A stretch of 64,000 nt of DNA, from assembly GCA_964199315.1 (NCBI GenBank), contig OZ116701.1, positions 21,018,001 to 21,082,000 on the forward strand, written 5' to 3'. The notes beneath the pieces were generated by a model. The model did no database searches. It worked only from the letters and a program-made list of their open reading frames with translations, and was not told where the DNA came from. The stretch comes from Orbicella franksi. Lineage: Eukaryota. The translations under genes and the position numbers were made by a program. Each line of letters opens with the position of its first letter. Positions within the stretch are counted from its first letter, which is position 1. Positions 3,300-43,605 of the stretch are shown in pieces.

Positions 3300-3321
3300 C
3301 TGAAAGAAATTAAATGGGAAA
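3300..3321 (-). promoter_or_regulatory. 3' splice acceptor of a probable 5'UTR intron of the 2290-3267 GPCR
   Basis: Minus strand reads ttcccatttaatttctttcag|gtagtag, 32 nt before the ATG; a consensus donor ttg|gtaagtat lies at 4989. Confidence 0.6.
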
Positions 3322-3722
3322 CAAAAAGTAAAACGTATTCTTAATTTCTGTGCAATGTTTCGTTAGCTGCAAATGAAACGAAGCGGTTTAACAGGTGGGT
3401 CAACTTCAGATTCAGTTTTGTCCGTTATAAATAAGAACACTTATTGGTGTGACCATATGGATGTATTGCTGCCTGTTAAAACACCAGTCAAAACTTTATG
3501 GATGAGCTCCAGTCACTGCAGGTTCAAGATGAAAAAGGCACCAAACGTCCATAATCCCGGGGCTCCAACGTGTCACGTACCCGCATGTAATACAATCGCA
3601 AAGCCGAGCAAACAACCTCACGAAATGTTCAGAATCCTCAGAATCTCAGTTTTAGCTAGTTTCTCGTAGGGTTGCATAATTTTGATTCCTATTTTTTGCT
3701 TTTCTATTGCTTTTCTATTTTA

Positions 3723-4007
3723 CCAGCAACAATCAGTGAACAAGTAAGAGCTAGGAGATGGAAATGGCCGGGCCATGTCTTGGGAATGTCTTCAGACCAA
3801 AATCCCAAGATAGCACTAACATGGGCACCAGAAGGCAAACGCAGAAGAGGACAGTTAAGTGAGACGGGGCAAAGAACGGTTAACAAGGAGAGAGAACATC
3901 TCTGATTCAAGACATGGAGGGAGGCAGAGGTGGCGGCAAAAAACCGAGTTGTTTGGAGGAGACTGATTGATGGTCCCCTTCTCTGCGAGGGGAGAAGGGG
4001 AAGATGA
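3723..4007 (+). mobile_element. 3' fragment of a non-LTR retrotransposon (RTE-like LINE ORF C-terminus), decayed
   Basis: One frame reads ISEQVRARRWKWPGHVLGMSSDQNPKIALTWAPEGKRRRGQ...L*FKTWREAEVAAKNRVVWRR, matching the RRW.W.GHVLR...W.P.GKR.RGRP...W...A..R..WR pattern of RTE-clade ORF ends; one internal stop. Confidence 0.75.
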
Positions 4008-4145
4008 CGCTTTTAGCACAAATCCAGATCCAACCAATCAAACTCTATTAATCGTACGGCTATCTATATCCTGCGATATCAACTAACATGATTTTGACAA
4101 CTCTGGTTAAAATCTTATTCACGTCGTATTACTGTACAGCTAAAC

Positions 4146-4690
4146 TTAAGGACGGTGTCTACTAGATATAAAGGTCTTTTTGCCAGGTCAGGACCCTGTC
4201 AGAAAATTCGATCTTAGCAAGGTCTATTGCACGCATTTTTCCGAGATAATTAGCCTTGAATCTCTGACAAAAATGCTGACGTCAGCATTTTTCTGAAAAA
4301 GAAGGAAAACATATTTCTTCACACATTTCCTTTGAATTCGTCTTTACATACAGAAAAGCAAACACATCGATATAGATCTTTAAATTACATGATGAATGGT
4401 AACATAAGAACCACTTTTGGTATGTCTGATAACAAAATCGCTGGAATGGCGCTTTTATCGTCCCTGACAGCTCTCCTCTGGCTTACCCAAAAATACAATC
4501 TAAATAACTTTTCCTCACAACCAGAAACTAATCAAGTGTTGAATAGGTTTGCCATTCCATTTCATAACATGAAATGTAGGGGGTAACCACACGTTTTTAA
4601 AAGTTAAATGAGTTGTTTTCATGTTTTTTGAAAAACGATCTAATGATTAAAAATTAGGAGTATTACAGAACTTCTCTACGCGTTTTGAAG
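4146..4690. mobile_element. Partial non-autonomous DNA transposon with a TTAA-GGACG terminus
   Basis: Begins ttaaggacggtgtctacta, sharing the ttaaggacg end of the 7178-7819 MITE; no matching second terminus found; right boundary approximate. Confidence 0.4.
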
Positions 4691-6435
4691 ATGTCAGTTC
4701 TTCGGTTGCTTACCTTCTGAGGAGGCAAAAAAACTTCAACGCTGATATTGTTTTAGGAGAGATTCGCCCATCGCACGCTGAAGGCCAGTGTCCCACCATA
4801 TCTCATCCTGCTTCTGACTGAGTAATATAGGCTCCAACAAATACAACACAAAAGAACTTTAACACAATGGCGATTGCATCTGGGAGAGAAAATCGTTTGA
4901 TTTCGGCGAAAACAGAAGAACAAGGAAAACTATTACATATAATGCTTATGTTGTAAAGGAAATTTTAAAATGATAACAGTGATACTTACCAAATAGATAG
5001 TCTGTGGCTGCACTCACTCTTTTCTCATTGTTTGTTTATATTCTGATACTTTTCCTCTTCTTTGAGTTCTTCAGAGTGGCTTTGTTTAACATCCGTTATT
5101 TGTTTTGCGATCTGATCTGAATGATTTTTCAGGCAAATCTTCTACAGAAACAGATCAGATCTTTGATAATAGAACTTTAAATAAATAATTTCCTTTTCTC
5201 TTAAATACCGATCTTGAAGTAATTCTATTGATACGCATGTTTCACAGCCGGCATAGCGCAAACCGTACTTCACAGTGGCCTAGACTCGTCCAATTAAAAT
5301 AAAATACCTCAAACCACAGGCTATTTAATAACAATACAAACGGCTTCTTGCTAATTGTCTAGATAATGAAGGAGATAGCTTTTACGATGAATGAACGAGC
5401 TAATAAATTAGTCTACCCAAAACTATAGCATAGGTTGCCAATAATTGTATAAATGTAGTCAACACACGTTCGATCACTGTGCAATAGCATGATATGAACT
5501 TGTTATTTACAAATCGAGTGGTCGCTGTAATTTCACACCGTGGAGGGAAAAAGTATTTTCAAGCTACACCTGACAATAATTGAACATGCTTTGAAAATGA
5601 AACATAACTTCATTATATTTATTGTCGCTTTAAATTTAGTTGCTTCAAGTGTGGAAGTTTCTTTAAGTTATGTAGAAGTTGGCTAAACTGAGTCGTATTT
5701 TTCAATTTGTGGTTGGAACACAAGGCAGGTGCCAAACTCACTGTCATTAAAATTATTCAAACATTAGCGCGTCCCGCGTGCAGAGACCGCTGTTGCTGTT
5801 TTCTTCGTAAATAATAATTGACAGAATAAAAAAACATTGCCGATAATAAAGTTATTACAATCGGAGAAAATGGTCTGAAACGTTTATTGTCAGTGTCTGG
5901 AACCAGAAACTGCTGAAATTGCACCTTCTGCTACTCGTTGTTGTAAGATTCTGTTATTATTGGAAGCACGCTTCACCATGTCACCACGTTGGGAGATATT
6001 GGTAGAAAATCAAAGTGGCTATGAGCCACTCAACTTGGAAAATGGATCGTCTGTAAGCAGTGACAATTTTGATGCCACTCACTTAAGGTTTTAATCCGTA
6101 GGTTAAGTTAAAGTTAAAGCCTACAAGCATTGTTAAGAAATAGTGCAAAACGCAACGGTAAGAGAATACACGGGGAGATGTGACACTGTTGAAAACATTC
6201 ATGAAGCTATCGGTCCGAGAGACCGAGTTATCCTCGAGAGACGGAGTTATTATCGAAGAGGCCGAGACAATTATAAAGAAAGTACCGCTTGTCCGATCGC
6301 AAAAGCAAGTAATAATTCTCATTTTCATTGCTGTCAGTTTTTTCGTTCTTTATTTTCCCAGCCAGTATCAGAGATTTTTTTTCTCTCTTTGTTACCTTTT
6401 CTCATCTTAGAAGCTAAAAAAAAATTCGTTCAGCG

Positions 6436-19182: not shown

Positions 19183-19311
19183 CTGTTCTTAAGAACGAGA
19201 AAGCTGTCTCGTAAAAACTGGTTGAATAAGTTAATAATAAACTGTTCCTGTTCTTAAGAACGAGAAAGCTGTCTCGTAAAAATTGGTTGAATAAGTTAAT
19301 AATAAACTGTT
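19183..19311. repeat. Tandem duplication, 2 x ~65 bp
   Basis: ctgttcttaagaacgagaaagctgtctcgtaaaaa(c/t)tggttgaataagttaataataaactgtt at 19183 and 19248; one mismatch. Confidence 0.95.
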
Positions 19312-19373
19312 AGGGAGTACAAAAAATATTTTGAAATTAGACTGCGTGGAATGTACTAACGATTTAAACCTAT

Positions 19374-19633
19374 GTGAAGTATATATGAAATAATTCATAT
19401 TTGAACTGCGGTTGTAGATGAAAGTGAAGAATGATCATCGCAGTAAATTAAGTTGGAACATTTACTGCGATGATCATTCTTCACTTTCATCTACAACCGC
19501 AGTTCAAATATGAATTATTTCATATATACTTCACATCATTTCACTCCTCACGGGAAGATATGAACTAAATTAATTGATCTCGCTCCCAATGTGTGGCTTC
19601 ATAGCTCAGACGGTAGAGCATCGCACCGGTATC

Positions 19634-19667
<34 letters not shown>

Positions 19668-19742
19668 TGATTTTTTCAGGCTTCCTCTTTCCAATTGCTT
19701 AAATTGGAAAATTTACTGCGAGGATCATTCTTCACTTTCTTT
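19374..19742 (+). mobile_element. tRNA-containing non-autonomous retroelement-like insertion with inverted 5' extension and flanking direct repeat
   Basis: Perfect 77-bp inverted repeat (19372-19448 / 19460-19536); 251-bp unit with 36-bp terminal redundancy (19453-19488 vs 19704-19739); 13-bp flanking direct repeat gatttaaacctat (19361-19373, 19743-19755). Confidence 0.8.
19595..19667 (+). tRNA. tRNA-Thr(GGT)-like cloverleaf inside a repeat; probably not a decoding tRNA
   Basis: Acceptor GGCTTCA/TGAAGCC, D stem GCTC/GAGC, T arm ACGGG-TTCGAAT-CCCGT, A and B boxes, T-run at 19671; anticodon stem has an A-C mismatch and position 33 is C rather than U. Confidence 0.7.
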
Positions 19743-22700
19743 GATTTAAACCTATATAAATAATTTAATAAAAATGAATTTCACCCTATAGATTATTCTA
19801 AACGCTTATGAAATCCAGCAACAGAGAGTGTTAATAACCACAATGCCAAAATTCTAATCATGTTCATCTTCATATTCCCAAGAATAAAAAGACACTTTTG
19901 GAGTTCCAAGGGAGATTGAGTTTTATTATAGAGATAGAATGAAGGGTGTCACCGCCTTTTCTCTTTTCAAAGGAGCAAGCCAAATAGTCATTTGTCATCA
20001 AACCGCTATTTTATCATTGTGATTTAATCTTGTAAATGCAATATGGTTACAAATTTATCTTGAATACGCCGTACTAATTGCCAAAGTGATTCAAATGGGC
20101 CAGAAATTAGTTTAATCTACGTAACAATAACCCAGTTATCGTGGCGGATTTAAAAAGATATAATTTATCATCACCATCATCACAAAGAATTCTTACTTTA
20201 TAGGCCGGCTCTAACCACTCATTTCTCTGTATCTGTCACAATAGAAATTATTCAGTATTTCAGTAGCTTTTATTCCTTTCATGTTTACTCAGTCAACTCA
20301 CGCTCAGAAGATTTTTATCTCATGCACTCGCCATTCTTGTTATTTTTCTTTCTCATTTTTTTTATTTTTCTGTTTCAGCTTTTGAATAATGTTTCTTCAT
20401 TCATATTTGAAATTATTTCATTAAGGCAAGCTTCAAAAGAGAACATTTTGCGCCAATGAGATGAAGTGGTAAATTATGCAGCAAAATTGTTGATATCAAT
20501 CAAAATTTCTCGTTTTTTCAATAACTGCATAGACCTGTCGGACTACTGAAAAGTTTACTGTCATTGAAATGATTGTCTCTAAAGCACGATTCACAGACGA
20601 CTCGAAAGATTTTGTTTTGCGCTTTGACTCACAACACGGTTGTTACAAATTCTATAGAAGAACCTCTCCAAACTCTCGATCGATATCTTTGGTCACTTGC
20701 TCTTGAGCCAAACGATAATGATTTGTATTTACAAGCAGGGATTTATTGATCACTCCTGACAACGAAGTTGAATTTTGACGCCGTATAGAAGCAGCAGTAT
20801 TATTCAAAACATCATAATGGAATTCAGTCGCATATCCACAGAAACAGTGGCCAGTATTTTTACTGCAAGTTGTGGGATATTTAACTAGATCACCTCAACG
20901 CAGCACATCAAGTGTTTTTAGATTCTGTCTGCAGTTTACAAATCGGGGATCGTCAAATATCGACTGCAGAATTCAACAGCGAACAGATCAGACCGTTAAA
21001 CACAAGAAAGAACCTGAATCAGCGTTTGTTACCTGTTGTTGATTAATGAGCTGGATATATTGCTGACAGAGTAGTTTTCAACCCATAACTTCTGTGACGT
21101 TTTTCCTATGTTTTCCTAGTAAATTCAAGATAACTGTGGTTGCTACCGCCGATGATTATCTGATGCCCAGTCCGCAAAACACCGCGGTAAGTGATGGCTA
21201 GTGTAAATAAGTTTCCACCCAATATTAACATTGTTTTAATAAATATAGTTAATTTGAGAATGGAATATTAAAAAGTCCCAGTCTTTTGGGAAAACTAATC
21301 TTTGCATTATAACTATGCACGCGCAATAAGCTGTGTCAACAAACTTAATGACAATTTTGTGACAGTTTTATACGATAAGATGTCATATTTTTTGTCGACA
21401 TTTGCATTTTTAACAGATAACTTTCTGGGCCGGGACTACTCAGATGAAGTGTGCACTTTTCTTTGATCCAATGCTACACAAATATCTAATTATTTTAGTA
21501 AAATGTAGTAACATACAACATACCATACCATTCATAGAACTCCTGTATAATCAAATACGCGTCACACTGTGTACATTTATTACAACTGTGTTGAATATTG
21601 ATGAGCTTACATTCAAAGTCGGCTTTTCTGTAATTTCAAGATAAAAGCAAATGAAGCTGGCTCTTTTTCCGTGAGAAAATGTCCTTTATGATTTGTCAGG
21701 CATCTAACTTCATGCGAGATTCGGATAATAAAGCCTGAAAGCGGGATAAAATTTCACGATGAGATCGGAAAAGAAAAACTGTAGTCTTAAGAAACAAGTT
21801 TTTCCCAGCAAAATGAAAAACAATGCCTTACCATACTCTTTTCAGAAAAAAAACTAAATCTTTGAAACAGAGTTCAAATAAGCTGTTACAGCTAACTGAC
21901 ATAAAGCTTGCGCTCAGACGTTTCTCAAACTAAGATACATTTCAAAGCCCTGTTGCCACAGAGAAAAAGAGATTTTGCGCGCAGAAAATGAAATAACAAA
22001 GAAGCAAACTCATTTGGTCTCTGGCGTGGGGTAGAGAAAATGTGAGTCATTTTCTCACACACTTTTCCGCACGTCTCCGCACGTCTCCGCGACCTCTAAA
22101 CAAAGTACCTCCACTAATTTTAATAATAGCCCAATTTTCAATGCTAGATTTGTTTTATATTCTGGTTGTTGCTCAACCCAATCAAAGAGAAATACCTGTC
22201 AAGTTATGGTGGCAGCTATACTTTTGATTTTAAATATGTGGTGAGCTGATCAACATTTTAAAACTACTGCTCCAAATCAAGTGCGGGAAATCCAAGGATC
22301 TAAGACCTCATCGTTTCTAGCTGTCGGGAAAAAAATATACCGATTTTAGCAAGTTTTCTATGAAGACGTTTGAAACCTTTCTGACTTTTACTGTCCCATC
22401 AAAGAATAACAACAGCATTTCGAGAGTTCTTCTGCGGACAAGCTGGAGGGATGTACCATGTTGGGAAAATGAAGACCGCAGAAAGCCAGGTCTTGTTTTG
22501 ACCTGTGTCTACCTAATGTCAAACGAAACCTGAGTCATTCTCATGCGTGCTATTTGTAACGTCATCTGTGGTCTGAAATAGCTAGCCCATTCCTGGACTC
22601 GAGCTCCATTGCTAGGTAACGAGACTTCGAGTATTCAAAAATTGGATATGGCTTTTATTATTTTTTTATAACTTTAATCTTCGCTACTTCTATTACAGAA

Positions 22701-40617: not shown

Positions 40618-40999
40618 TGCTTATTGTTTACGCAACTTTGTCATTGAATTAGCTTACGTGCCGTCTACATACCATTCGTAAAAAAATCTAACGAGCGAAC
40701 GAGCGAGTAACTCAGGTACTAGACAAAGATGTATTAAAGAACAGATTTATTTCGAACTACTTTACGTTAGTTGCATTTAGTTCACCAGTTACGTTCTCCA
40801 GAAGTGTTTTTCCGGTGTGAAATTTCGTGCAAAGTTTGAAGTTCTAATCAACAATGATTTAGATAAACATATACAGGCAAAAACTAACGATAGATAAATC
40901 CGACGTTTCGGGGACATCTTGGCGCCATTGTCAAGGGAAACTAATTAAATATGCGATTTCAAGAGTAACTAAGAGTTCAGAGTTTCTAATTTGCATAAG

Positions 41000-41740
41000 T
41001 TAGACAAAGACTTTAGCGCGAACTGAGTCTGATTGTACATTTAAACACGGTCGTAATTGTTTAATGAGTAACATCTCATTAATGAGACAATCAAACTTGT
41101 TGTGGCATTTTTTCAACACGCTAAAACAATTGCGAAGGTCATCCGGAATCCTGCCTGCGTGTCTACTATCATAGTGATTGCGTACTGACGAGGTCTTGCT
41201 TCTATGTCCATCAACGCGTACGAACAGATGGCCACAGGTGTAACCGACATAACCAGCATCGCACTGGTCACACTTGAAGTTATACACAACAAATTGTTGA
41301 TCAATGAGCTGAGGCTTAGGTTCGCTTGTCGGGAACTCCTGGGCAATCTTGCGGCTCGTAAACACCGGTTGAACACTGGTCTGCAGCTTCACACTGAGAT
41401 CTTTCAACTGTGTCTTCACGATATTAGCAGACTCCTGGTCTTTAAAGGGTATGACAACCCGAGTAGTGTTTTCTGTCGTAGATCTGGACCGTAATGAGGG
41501 CTGGTCAGCGACCTTTAAATTTAGGAAGGTTTTGACAGTGGAGTCAACAAGGTGCTTGGGATATTTCAGTTTAGAGAAAACAGACTTCAGTCGTTCGCAC
41601 TCCTCAGTGAAGTAGGACCATGACGAAGACAGGCGATGTGCGCGATCGAGCATAGTTGTCAATAGTCCGCGCTTGTACCTATTATCGACATGACTGTGGT
41701 AATGGAGAAGCAGACCACTGTTTGTTGGCTTCACAAACAC
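41000..41740 (-). pseudogene. Penelope-like RT thumb / GIY-YIG endonuclease ORF remnant
   Basis: 246-codon open stretch starting at GTG directly after an in-frame TAA (41741-41743); the catalytic RT core is absent because of 5' truncation. Confidence 0.85.
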
Positions 41741-41930
41741 TTAAGTTTCAATACGAGGCGCTCTGTTTAGGAGTTGAGTACCGAGAAAGGGAAGCATTCC
41801 ATCATTTTCGACCTCCATAGTAAAGTTGATGGCGGGGTGAGCGTGGTTGAGGGTGTTAAGAAAGTCCCTAGCTGTGGACAAATGAACTCTGAACTCTTAG
41901 TTACTCTTGAAATCGCATATTTAATTAGTT

Positions 41931-41970
41931 TCCCTTGACAATGGCGCCAAGATGTCGCCGAAACGTCGGA
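41931..41970 (+). ncRNA. Minimal type I hammerhead-like motif (U3-A8 variant) in Penelope terminal repeat; second copy on the minus strand at about 40899-40938
   Basis: ttgacaa-t-ggcg-ccaagatgt-cgcc-gaa-ac-gtc: core UUGACAA, stem II GGCG/CGCC, GAAA, palindromic ACGU helix III, GUC triplet. The minus-strand copy has a stem II mismatch. Confidence 0.6.
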
Positions 41971-43605
41971 TTTATCTATCGTTAGTTTTTGCCTGTATAA
42001 GTTTGAAGTTGTACTACAAAAACAATTTCTGTCAGTCGTTGCGAAATCAGTCGAAATCAGACTCTTCTACCGTAAATTGAGTAGCAGATAGCGAGGAAAT
42101 TCGTAAAGTGTACTCCACCGAAATTCTGTCAAATGCAGCAATGATCAGTGAGGTAAACTCGACTGAAATTGACTCATTTTTTACTTAAAATTGTACAGAG
42201 AGAGACACACAGGTTTACGCGCCATTACAGCGCCGAGCTACAAAGAGCCAAACAAACTCTCACAACTTCAAAAAAACTCAATTAAATCTACTGACAGTGA
42301 ATTTCCTTGCCATTTAGAGGTGAATCGTCTATGAGGTGTAAAAAGGGCGAAAGATTGACGATTACCGCTAATTCGTTCACGAAAATAGATCAACTCGACG
42401 GATTCCGTCCGCTGTGGCGGTCCGGATGACAAAATTACGCCTGCTACAAGAACCAATTAGATTCCAGGAATTGTTGAATTTCGCCCGCTCACGAGCTGAG
42501 AAAAAGATAAAACTCATTATTGTATTCTTGAAACGACTAGCGGTTAAAATATTCAAATAATCAATTCATTAACGAAATCTTGAGGGGTACACGTCGCTTG
42601 GTTTGACTCACAAATGTTGACATTGTTGTGAGATTTGATGTATTCGTAAAGAACTTTCTAAGTTTCTTTTGAGATAAGATAAGATAACTTTATTATAACT
42701 TAGTTTATAATTCACACATTGTCTTTTGTTATCCACTGACCCATATTTATCTTACAACGCGTGTGAATAGTAAACTAATTGAAAGTGGGTGGAGGACCTG
42801 ATGGAGCAGGGCAAATGAATTGAATTGATCGATTAGTAAGGGATTTATACATATAAATCCCTTTTGTAAGGGAATTACGCAGATTATGTATTGTGGTCTA
42901 TGAAATGTTGTAGTTTGTAATTAATACAAGCTCTTTCTGACGAAATCAAATACGTTAACTACTTCAGTATGTCACGATAGGGTTTGATTGACTGTAACTT
43001 TCAGATTAATTATGTAATATTAGACACCCGCTGTGCTAACCATTCAAATTGTAAGGCCACGCATTAGAGCTTACCAGTTTCCCCAGTGAATTAATTCTTC
43101 TAATTACAGCATTGTCAACTTGGAATCGACAACATGGTTCGCATTATCGAAAACATGGCATTACGGTATTCCTATACATTAACCCTTTTCTTGACAACTT
43201 GTCTGGAATTTGGTTCCGCCGAACAACTTCGTATGCAGTGTGTTGGAGCTGTCGGTACTTTGCTCTTCATAAAATCTTTTAGCTGTTTCTGTCGAGTTTC
43301 ACTTCATACGTTTTGGCCTACTTGACAGACTGACAAAACCAACGACGCGTGCAACCGCTTCTTGTCAACATCAGACAAGGCAAAGAAAACAGCGTGCAAT
43401 CCAAACAACCTTGTGTTATTCAAATGACTTAGTCTTCGAGTCAAATCCGGACGATCTCTTCATTTGTCAGAGAGCCACACAATGGTAACAATGTCAGGTG
43501 ACGAGACAAAAAGTATTTTGCTTCCTGCTGGAGCCCAAAAACATGGTACTATAAATTTGCAAGCTTTTCCGCGTCCTCTTGGGCTTTGTATAATGTTCTT
43601 ATTAA

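Follow-up and report, generated by a model that had tools for sequence, protein, structure and literature searches.

A tRNA-like module in a high-copy coral retroelement family that carries a Penelope-type insertion signature

We analyzed a window of 64,000 nucleotides from contig OZ116701.1 of Orbicella franksi. A preliminary description of this DNA had pointed to a tRNA-bearing repeat flanked by a 13-bp direct repeat and built from a 251-bp unit together with an inverted copy of the unit's start. The features of this copy are listed below; positions are those of the window.

19361-19373, no strand: left copy of the target-site duplication, 13 bp, GATTTAAACCTAT
19374-19448, minus strand: inverted arm, the reverse complement of unit 1-77, 100% complementary to 19460-19536
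19449-19459, plus strand: head-to-head junction, 11 nt matching unit 241-251 with two mismatches; 5' end of the forward arm
19460-19710, plus strand: complete 251-bp unit; unit position 1 is 19460
19479-19489, plus strand: start-site motif 1, CTTCACTTTCA; family copies end just after it, at unit ~30
19508-19525, plus strand: 7-bp hairpin ATATGAA-TTAT-TTCATAT between the two start sites (sequence and fold)
19529-19538, plus strand: start-site motif 2, CTTCACATCA; family copies end just after it, at unit ~79
19595-19667, plus strand: tRNA-like gene (ARAGORN, Rfam); cloverleaf intact, with A and B boxes
19660-19685, plus strand: alternative hairpin of the acceptor 3' strand with downstream GGCTTC, the T-run in its loop (fold)
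19671-19676, plus strand: T6 run, Pol III terminator-like, 4 nt past the tRNA; invariant in 79 aligned units
19691-19707, plus strand: ccaatt/aattgg hairpin (sequence and fold)
19711-19742, plus strand: start of the next unit (unit 1-29), then three extra T; ends at the ~30 start site
19743-19755, no strand: right copy of the target-site duplication, 13 bp, GATTTAAACCTAT

The architecture described earlier was confirmed: the flanking 13-bp repeat, the T-run and small hairpin behind the tRNA, and the perfect inverted copy, whose two 77-nt stretches (19372-19448 and 19460-19536) lie 11 nt apart. Two details had to be revised. The 11 nt had been regarded as a spacer, which is right as to length, but they belong to the end of the unit, and the two arms share a 2-nt overlap at this junction. 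The full unit stands, but the following one supplies 29 templated bases (19711-19739), not 36, and three further T come after them. Stretches 19448-19488 and 19699-19739 repeat each other directly at a period of 251 bp. The outer end of the inverted arm is the ~79 start site, i.e. the end bearing the 'tail'. The unit differs from the family consensus at 7 positions, its RNA folds into a strong structure (z -4.99), and a 36-codon frame across both start sites has no match outside the family. No empty allele of this copy was found in the assembly or in coral-metagenome contigs. The pattern did not arise by chance, as dozens of independent copies repeat this architecture. We consider it likely that 19374-19742 was inserted recently and belongs to a high-copy family of non-coding retroelements with 251-bp units and Penelope-type insertion.

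The family occupies at least 1,382 candidate places in this genome, and the copies listed are 93-98% identical. Exact 25-mer core units numbered 705 and head-to-head pattern matches 510, with none of either in the controls. At least 120 contigs from coral metagenomes, a mix of the same and other species, also carry the family. Two pairs of loci (L011/L012 and L014/L015) are segmental duplicates. One contig (L067) contains an insertion with a 13-bp duplication whose two flanks adjoin in this genome, where the homologous site is empty and the 13-bp target stands only once. The flanks of L067 are 85-86% identical to this genome and element copies in that contig 97-99% identical to the consensus. 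This difference is no firm sign of horizontal transfer, since the flank match may be paralogous and the metagenome contigs are of mixed species. In practical terms, tRNA gene predictions in coral genomes are inflated by the family, with 705 exact cores in this assembly.

In each insertion, two tandem arms of 1.1 to 8 units, both truncated at the 5' end, meet head to head. The complete copies examined were overwhelmingly two-armed; about 25 were single-armed, mostly without a clear duplication. We classified the outer ends of 50 two-armed insertions pooled from this genome and from independent metagenome contigs (5 more had one unclassifiable end). A ~30 end was paired with a ~79 end in all 50, and no insertion was 30/30 or 79/79. 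Both ends lie directly after a common CTTCACxT(T)CA motif, and the resulting one-sided 'tail' measures 49 nt. Target duplications had a median and mode of 13 bp and ranged from 8 to 17 bp (n=39). Both primer strands show a T-rich nick motif, TT(G/T)^NT. The Penelope fragment at 40.8-42.0 kb of the window, to which the tRNA-bearing copy had been likened, has the same one-sided tail, in support of that comparison; no hammerhead was detected in this fragment at E<=1.

The inner junctions behave differently from the outer ends. Their positions vary among copies, with microhomology of at least 2 nt in 25 of 69, and 10 of the 69 are symmetric where 2.7 were expected (p=1e-4). The 5' ends of the arms are scattered over the unit. 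No pile-up was seen at unit 136 or 209, the boundaries of the tRNA; ends at 132-139 stayed within uniform expectation, and several seeming tRNA-boundary ends turned out to be deletions or tiny hairpins. The proposed marking of RNA ends by RNase P/Z at the tRNA is thus invisible in the DNA. The collected copies include the tandem arrays, variable inner 5' ends and inverted arms that the preliminary description had proposed to look for, and they do not start uniformly at the tRNA. Internal structure varies from copy to copy.

Separately, we observed a broad excess of arm 5' ends between unit 186 and 251, which may stem from short cDNAs and the sampling of copies. That ends at 192-194 mark a stop of the reverse transcriptase at a modified A58 is only a guess.

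tRNA-like sequences usually belong to SINEs, and a Pol III transcript moved by a LINE would agree with the intact A and B boxes and the T-run. In L1 biology, twin priming generates inverted 5' parts, and it could supply the inversions here as well. However, the tRNA is internal and never forms the 5' end of the element. An A-rich or microsatellite tail is absent; the copies end in ...CTTCACTTTCA and ...CTTCACATCA instead, two fixed internal sites that are always used one of each. The prevalence of two-armed copies, the presence of up to eight T6 runs per arm and the lack of 5' ends clustered at a transcription start likewise argue against an ordinary tRNA-derived SINE, which we regard as very unlikely. 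The paired ~30/~79 ends, the 13-bp median duplications and the T-rich sites bear out the earlier view of a non-autonomous, Penelope-type element. Fixed termini that look alike when inverted (TGATGTGAAG... and ...CTTCACTTTCA) might also suggest a DNA transposon or MITE in which terminal inverted repeats, short and imperfect, enclose an internal tandem array. Yet one common start-site motif explains the terminal likeness, one end reaches 49 nt deeper into the same sequence than the other, duplication length is not fixed, and unit number, junction position and filler differ in almost every copy, so that such an origin is extremely improbable. Just as improbable is a satellite that spread through recombination, through segmental duplication or through the reintegration of circular DNA: tandem arrays and segmentally duplicated loci do exist, but the family occupies hundreds of dispersed sites with their own target duplications and the same two end points, and the empty homologous site retains a single 13-bp target copy.

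Penelope-type insertion raises the question of the RNA that is copied. Both arms of insertions carry common subfamily variants; among the variants scored, 65 were fixed within an insertion, 46 were subset variants and 202 were singletons. We infer a tRNA-sense template of more than one unit. The preliminary description had suggested a tandem or circular RNA; its length beyond one unit and its tRNA sense agree with our data, but a circle is unnecessary for the model. A unit-length circle, freed by RNase P/Z at the tRNA and reverse transcribed by a rolling-circle mode, would fit the homogeneous units in both arms of most short insertions and the strongly structured unit RNA, and coral hammerhead retrozymes of similar size form circles (PMC7229834). 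Several observations speak against it. In L009, four private variants and an indel are confined, in mirror image, to the innermost partial units of the two arms. L045 combines a two-unit periodicity with variants that are arm-specific, and L033 contains variants that are unit-specific. Such patterns are impossible from a monomer circle, which is excluded for some copies by the mirror-image variants of L009 and the periodicity of L045. The symmetric junctions fit cDNAs that reach a shared linear 5' end or stop, and if RNase P and RNase Z both cut, the tRNA would be lost from the circle, whereas copies retain it. As a general template, the unit-length circle is therefore unlikely. Pol III, for which the tRNA fold had been proposed as a promoter, would not easily make the long templates because the arms cross up to eight T6 runs; judged from the sequence, it would stop at the T6 right after the tRNA, before the start sites.

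We propose that the insertions would arise by Penelope-type target-primed reverse transcription. A T-rich target would be nicked on both strands, ~13 bp apart, and each 3' end, often ...TG, would prime cDNA synthesis on the multi-unit tRNA-sense RNA, with the two internal start sites used by one strand each. The two same-sense cDNAs would halt at variable points and be joined via short, often palindromic, microhomology, after which each would template the synthesis of the other strand. The enzyme would be provided by one of the many Penelope-like elements of the genome, in which we counted 3,471 candidate Penelope-like reverse transcriptases (RVT_1 with or without GIY-YIG) and 1,018 GIY-YIG candidates.

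The tRNA-like module, called as tRNA-Thr(GGT) by ARAGORN, covers unit 136-208. This confirms the cloverleaf noticed earlier in the middle of the unit, with its start corrected from about 140 nt to 136. It scores 60.4 bits against a 29-bit Rfam threshold and is the sole Rfam match in the 64 kb. The acceptor, D and T stems are all paired and the A and B boxes are kept. The anticodon loop is atypical, with C33 in place of U and a GGT anticodon, and A31.C39 is the sole non-standard pair, in agreement with the earlier statement that only decoding features are degenerate. GGT is, to our knowledge, an unusual Thr anticodon in eukaryotes. We also considered a functional tRNA-Thr gene, which would canonically have U33 and pairing throughout the anticodon stem; C33 and the A31.C39 mismatch speak against it. 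No clear parent emerged when the module was aligned with three other tRNA genes from the retrieved loci.

Within the unit, conservation is highest in the tRNA-like module. Non-CpG variant sites shared by at least four insertions were absent from the tRNA and numbered 8 in the start, 2 in the middle and 6 in the 3'-flank region (about 14 events if a 3-bp deletion is counted once). Pooled non-CpG divergence was lowest in the tRNA among the four unit regions; by data group, the tRNA was lowest in 3 of 7, this genome included, and near-lowest in the rest, a difference of which different base composition could explain part. A search of three and a half tandem units against Rfam (E<=1) yielded no ribozyme; the tRNA was the only hit (57.6-62.3 bits).

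As to the role of the module, we lean, with somewhat less than even confidence, towards a host-processed or structural RNA module, acted on by RNase P/Z or serving as a protein handle. An internal Pol III promoter whose T6 is read through has a modest probability, and a recent relic is about equally plausible. It is doubtful that the module works as a substitute for the hammerhead, with RNase P/Z shaping the template or the fold offering a structured handle to a telomerase-related reverse transcriptase. If the handle reading were true, the family would represent a living example, in an animal genome, of a tRNA-like 'tag' that directs a reverse transcriptase.

The family combines a known Penelope insertion signature with a tRNA-like module at the position of the self-cutting ribozyme of its known relatives. 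Among retrotransposon classes, Penelope-like elements are the one about which least is understood, down to the function of their hammerhead. A family that is large and young, probably uses the same insertion machinery and has a tRNA-like module in the hammerhead's place offers a natural comparison for that position of the RNA. The insertion reaction has left its record in dozens of sequenced copies and in hundreds of further ones across the genome, and the strict rule of one start site per strand together with the short-palindrome junctions places testable constraints on the Penelope mechanism.

Several known systems resemble the family in part. Like tRNA-derived SINEs (SINE2), it is a short, non-autonomous, high-copy retroelement with an A/B-box tRNA-like sequence, but the coral tRNA is not a 5' head, keeps its full cloverleaf and is directly followed by T6, a LINE-type tail is missing, and insertions have two arms and exceed one unit in length. 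TRIMp3 elements (Cassandra, Helenus, Ajax) are also non-SINE, non-autonomous retroelements with a small-RNA gene in a repeated terminal part, their tRNA or 5S gene being presumably a Pol III promoter (PMC10886601); their LTRs, primer-binding site, polypurine tract and 4-5-bp duplications are all absent from the coral family. Non-autonomous Chlamys elements of Chlamydomonas (MRC1) share the non-coding, Penelope-type nature, with pseudo-LTRs and multicopy head-to-tail insertions (PMC8557442), but have 3' sequence in common with an autonomous partner and lack a tRNA-like gene. Animal non-LTR retrozymes, e.g. of Acropora millepora, are abundant in corals, consist of AT-rich, non-coding tandem units of 170-400 bp with duplications >4 bp, and have been proposed to be mobilized by Penelope-like elements (PMC7229834; bioRxiv 10.64898/2026.07.22.740005). 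The coral family agrees with them in its small tandem AT-rich non-coding units and duplications longer than 4 bp; it differs in having a tRNA-like module in the place of a type I hammerhead or other Rfam ribozyme, and in that a circular template is excluded for some copies.

The closest resemblance is to Penelope-like elements (Penelope/Poseidon, Neptune, Naiad; PAc). Penelope insertions are partial tandems accompanied by an inverted copy that is truncated at its 5' end, and only one end of the insertion bears a tail (PMC8557442). PAc of Anolis nicks and extends both strands, with two adjacent internal RNA initiation sites giving rise to the tail (PMC11167929). All of these traits recur in the coral family, as do variable duplications at AT/T-rich targets. 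Unlike these elements, however, it has no ORF and no hammerhead, and carries a tRNA-like gene. Its sequence is dissimilar to three Penelope-like families from this genome (L058-L064), with only 12-nt chance matches and no start-site motif there, and no autonomous partner was recognized among them. Its 49-nt tail is longer than the published 30-40 bp, and its strict use of one start site of each kind is stronger than in the in-vitro PAc report, in which the two strands showed no difference in their choice of start site (PMC11167929). The tRNA-like module lies ~70-120 nt 5' of the start sites, and relative to these sites the PAc hammerhead (PMC11167929) and the coral tRNA module occupy roughly the same place.

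The preliminary description of the tRNA-carrying insertion proved correct base for base, and its parts in the window are as follows.

19374-19742: the insertion, with the 13-bp direct repeat GATTTAAACCTAT present on both sides.
19372-19448: inverted arm of 77 nt, a perfect reverse complement of 19460-19536.
Between the arms: 11 nt, the final 11 nt of the repeat unit.
19460-19710: one full 251-bp unit (unit position 1 is 19460), followed by 29 bases templated by the next unit and then TTT.
19595-19667: tRNA-like gene called by ARAGORN and Rfam (60.4 bits, the sole Rfam family match across the window).

The tRNA-like gene is fully paired in the acceptor, D and T stems and carries an A.C mismatch in the anticodon arm, C at position 33 and the anticodon GGT. 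Located 50 bp upstream of the insertion and unrelated to it is a 64-bp unit present twice in tandem (window 19183-19311, 98% identical).

This copy belongs to a large and young family. Searching the 497-Mb Orbicella franksi genome with the unit returned at least 1,382 candidate places; full-unit copies among the matches listed share 93-98% identity with the window unit. A 25-mer that runs from the tRNA 3' end through the T-run and the GGCTTC behind it has 705 exact occurrences in the genome (reversed control 0), and a pattern specific for the head-to-head junction gave 510 matches (control 0). At least 705 ARAGORN-grade ‘tRNA-Thr(GGT)’ loci are derived from the repeat, and automatic tRNA counts for this coral can therefore be expected to be too high. 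The same 25-mer is found in at least 120 coral-metagenome contigs, which are of mixed origin; over 1.6 kb, contig L160 is 99.9% and contig L123 97.5% identical to Orbicella franksi loci. Some contigs, these two among them, belong to the same species or one very close to it, and others to more distant hosts.

Every copy was aligned against the tandem consensus. Nearly all complete insertions consist of two head-to-head arms, each of them a tandem series of 0.1 to 8 units that is truncated at its 5' end. The outer arm ends are fixed, one at unit position ~30 and its partner at ~79, the putative start sites of reverse transcription. Among 55 complete two-armed insertions, 50 combined 30 with 79, none paired 30 with 30 or 79 with 79, and the remaining 5 had one degraded end; under independent end choice the probability of 50/50 such pairings is near 1e-15. 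One motif precedes both ends, as CTTCACTTTCA before one and CTTCACATCA before the other, and a 7-bp hairpin separates the two. In 39 target duplications the length ranged from 8 to 17 bp, with a median and mode of 13 bp. The two nick sites have a T-rich context in common when viewed on the priming strand, TT(G/T)^NT, and the last primer base is enriched for G, which can pair with the CA closing each start motif.

A two-armed copy of 188 bp, bordered by a 13-bp duplication, is present in a metagenome contig (L067), and its flanks match the Orbicella franksi genome at 85-86%, where they are directly adjacent with a single target between them; this copy is an insertion and not a rearrangement. 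For the window copy, no empty allele was found in the Orbicella franksi assembly or the metagenome contigs. The L067 copy itself (2775-2962) is 97-98% identical to the Orbicella franksi consensus, in contrast to the 85-86% of its flanks against G000:C6:28355482-28356922, and other repeats common to L067 and the genome reach at most 93%. Strong conservation or transfer between corals could account for this, but so could a flank match that is simply paralogous.

The inner arm ends vary among copies, in line with 5' truncation. Microhomology of at least 2 nt was present at 25/69 junctions, against roughly 6-8% expected by chance, and filler at 34/69. Inner-end statistics are affected by copy sampling. 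Symmetric junctions, at which the arms stop within 3 nt of each other in unit position, numbered 10/69 compared to 2.7 under partner shuffling (p=1e-4), several of them on short palindromes, for example TTCGAA within the T loop and AAATTT where two units meet. The two same-sense cDNAs presumably anneal via their 3' ends at such short self-complementary stretches, each then being completed using the other as template.

The preliminary description had proposed a tandem or circular RNA template. Subfamily markers are common to both arms of an insertion, and within-insertion variants occur in all units (65), in a single unit (202) or in a subset (46), the last concentrated in a few arrays. At locus L009 four private variants and an indel are confined to the innermost partial unit of each arm, in mirror image. 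At L045 (G000:C12:13120000-13127000, 3310-5285) the units of a seven-plus-unit arm alternate at four positions with two-unit periodicity, and this arm differs from the opposite one at about ten positions; either a heterogeneous template or array growth after insertion would account for the pattern. A monomer circle would not yield these variants. The mirror-image and periodic arrangements at the two loci seem to require a template that is linear, heterogeneous and several units long, such as would be transcribed from a genomic array. A circle may still have served as template for the short homogeneous copies, which are many.

The tandem units contained no hammerhead or other ribozyme detectable in Rfam at E<=1. 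The distance from the tRNA downstream to the start sites is about 70 nt for one and 120 nt for the other, roughly matching the position of the hammerhead in PAc, a Penelope-like element of Anolis (distances from PMC11167929). None of the tRNA's 59 non-CpG positions is a variant site common to at least four independent insertions (about 3.6 expected, P about 0.015). With all insertions pooled, the tRNA diverges least of four regions at non-CpG positions (0.015; others 0.022-0.037); it ranks lowest in 3/7 data groups, including the Orbicella franksi genome, and near-lowest in the others. By these measures the tRNA is the most conserved part of the unit; base composition could contribute to the low divergence. 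Both the A box and the B box are intact, but a T6 run follows 4 nt past the tRNA (up to eight such runs in long arms), and Pol III would have to transcribe through it before a start site is reached. No sign that RNase P/Z marks the ends was seen in the DNA: some arms have their 5' end at 132-139 or at 205-218, in numbers within chance and alignment ambiguity. The module may be a candidate Pol III promoter, RNase P/Z site or protein handle. In all units (window 19660-19685) GGCTTC occurs twice, as the tRNA 5' acceptor strand and 13 nt past the tRNA; the acceptor 3' strand can pair with either, and the alternative hairpin has the T-run in its loop.

Penelope-like elements are plentiful in the genome. 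The family of the copy at window 40832-42013 has 3,471 candidate matches, and its longest frame (829 aa, L058) contains RVT_1 only, with no GIY-YIG detected; a related family combines RVT_1 and GIY-YIG. Candidates for GIY-YIG number 1,018 genome-wide. The unit had nothing in common with the three Penelope-like families compared. Unit positions 11-118 (window 19470-19577) hold a 36-codon frame from ATG to TGA across both start sites, with no relative among the loci compared; by analogy it could be what is left of the coding start of the partner, the PAc start sites being located within the 5' end of the PAc ORF.

Penelope-like insertions are described as partial tandems with an adjacent inverted 5'-truncated copy and a ‘tail’ of 30-40 bp, often at one end only (Craig et al., PMC8557442). 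In experiments with a purified Penelope-like protein, both DNA strands were nicked and extended, and reverse transcription began at two internal sites close together on the RNA, the tail being the intervening sequence (Frangieh et al., PMC11167929). The family described here shares this signature. The truncated Penelope-like copy at 40832-42013 (about 40,847-41,998) has the same anatomy of inverted arms, duplication and one-sided extension: its 120-bp arms are 98% complementary, the 12-bp duplication is AAGTTTGAAGTT, and about 20 extra nt are present on the left but not on the right. Its 246-aa frame gave no Pfam match. The best reading of the tRNA-carrying family is thus that of a non-autonomous passenger of Penelope-like machinery. 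Our literature search found hammerhead retrozymes (PMC7229834), non-autonomous Chlamys elements (PMC8557442) and LTR elements whose promoters derive from tRNA or 5S genes (PMC10886601), and no Penelope-type element with a tRNA-like gene. The family also goes beyond the published Penelope-like descriptions (PMC8557442, PMC11167929) in using strictly one start site per strand and in its tail of 49 nt.
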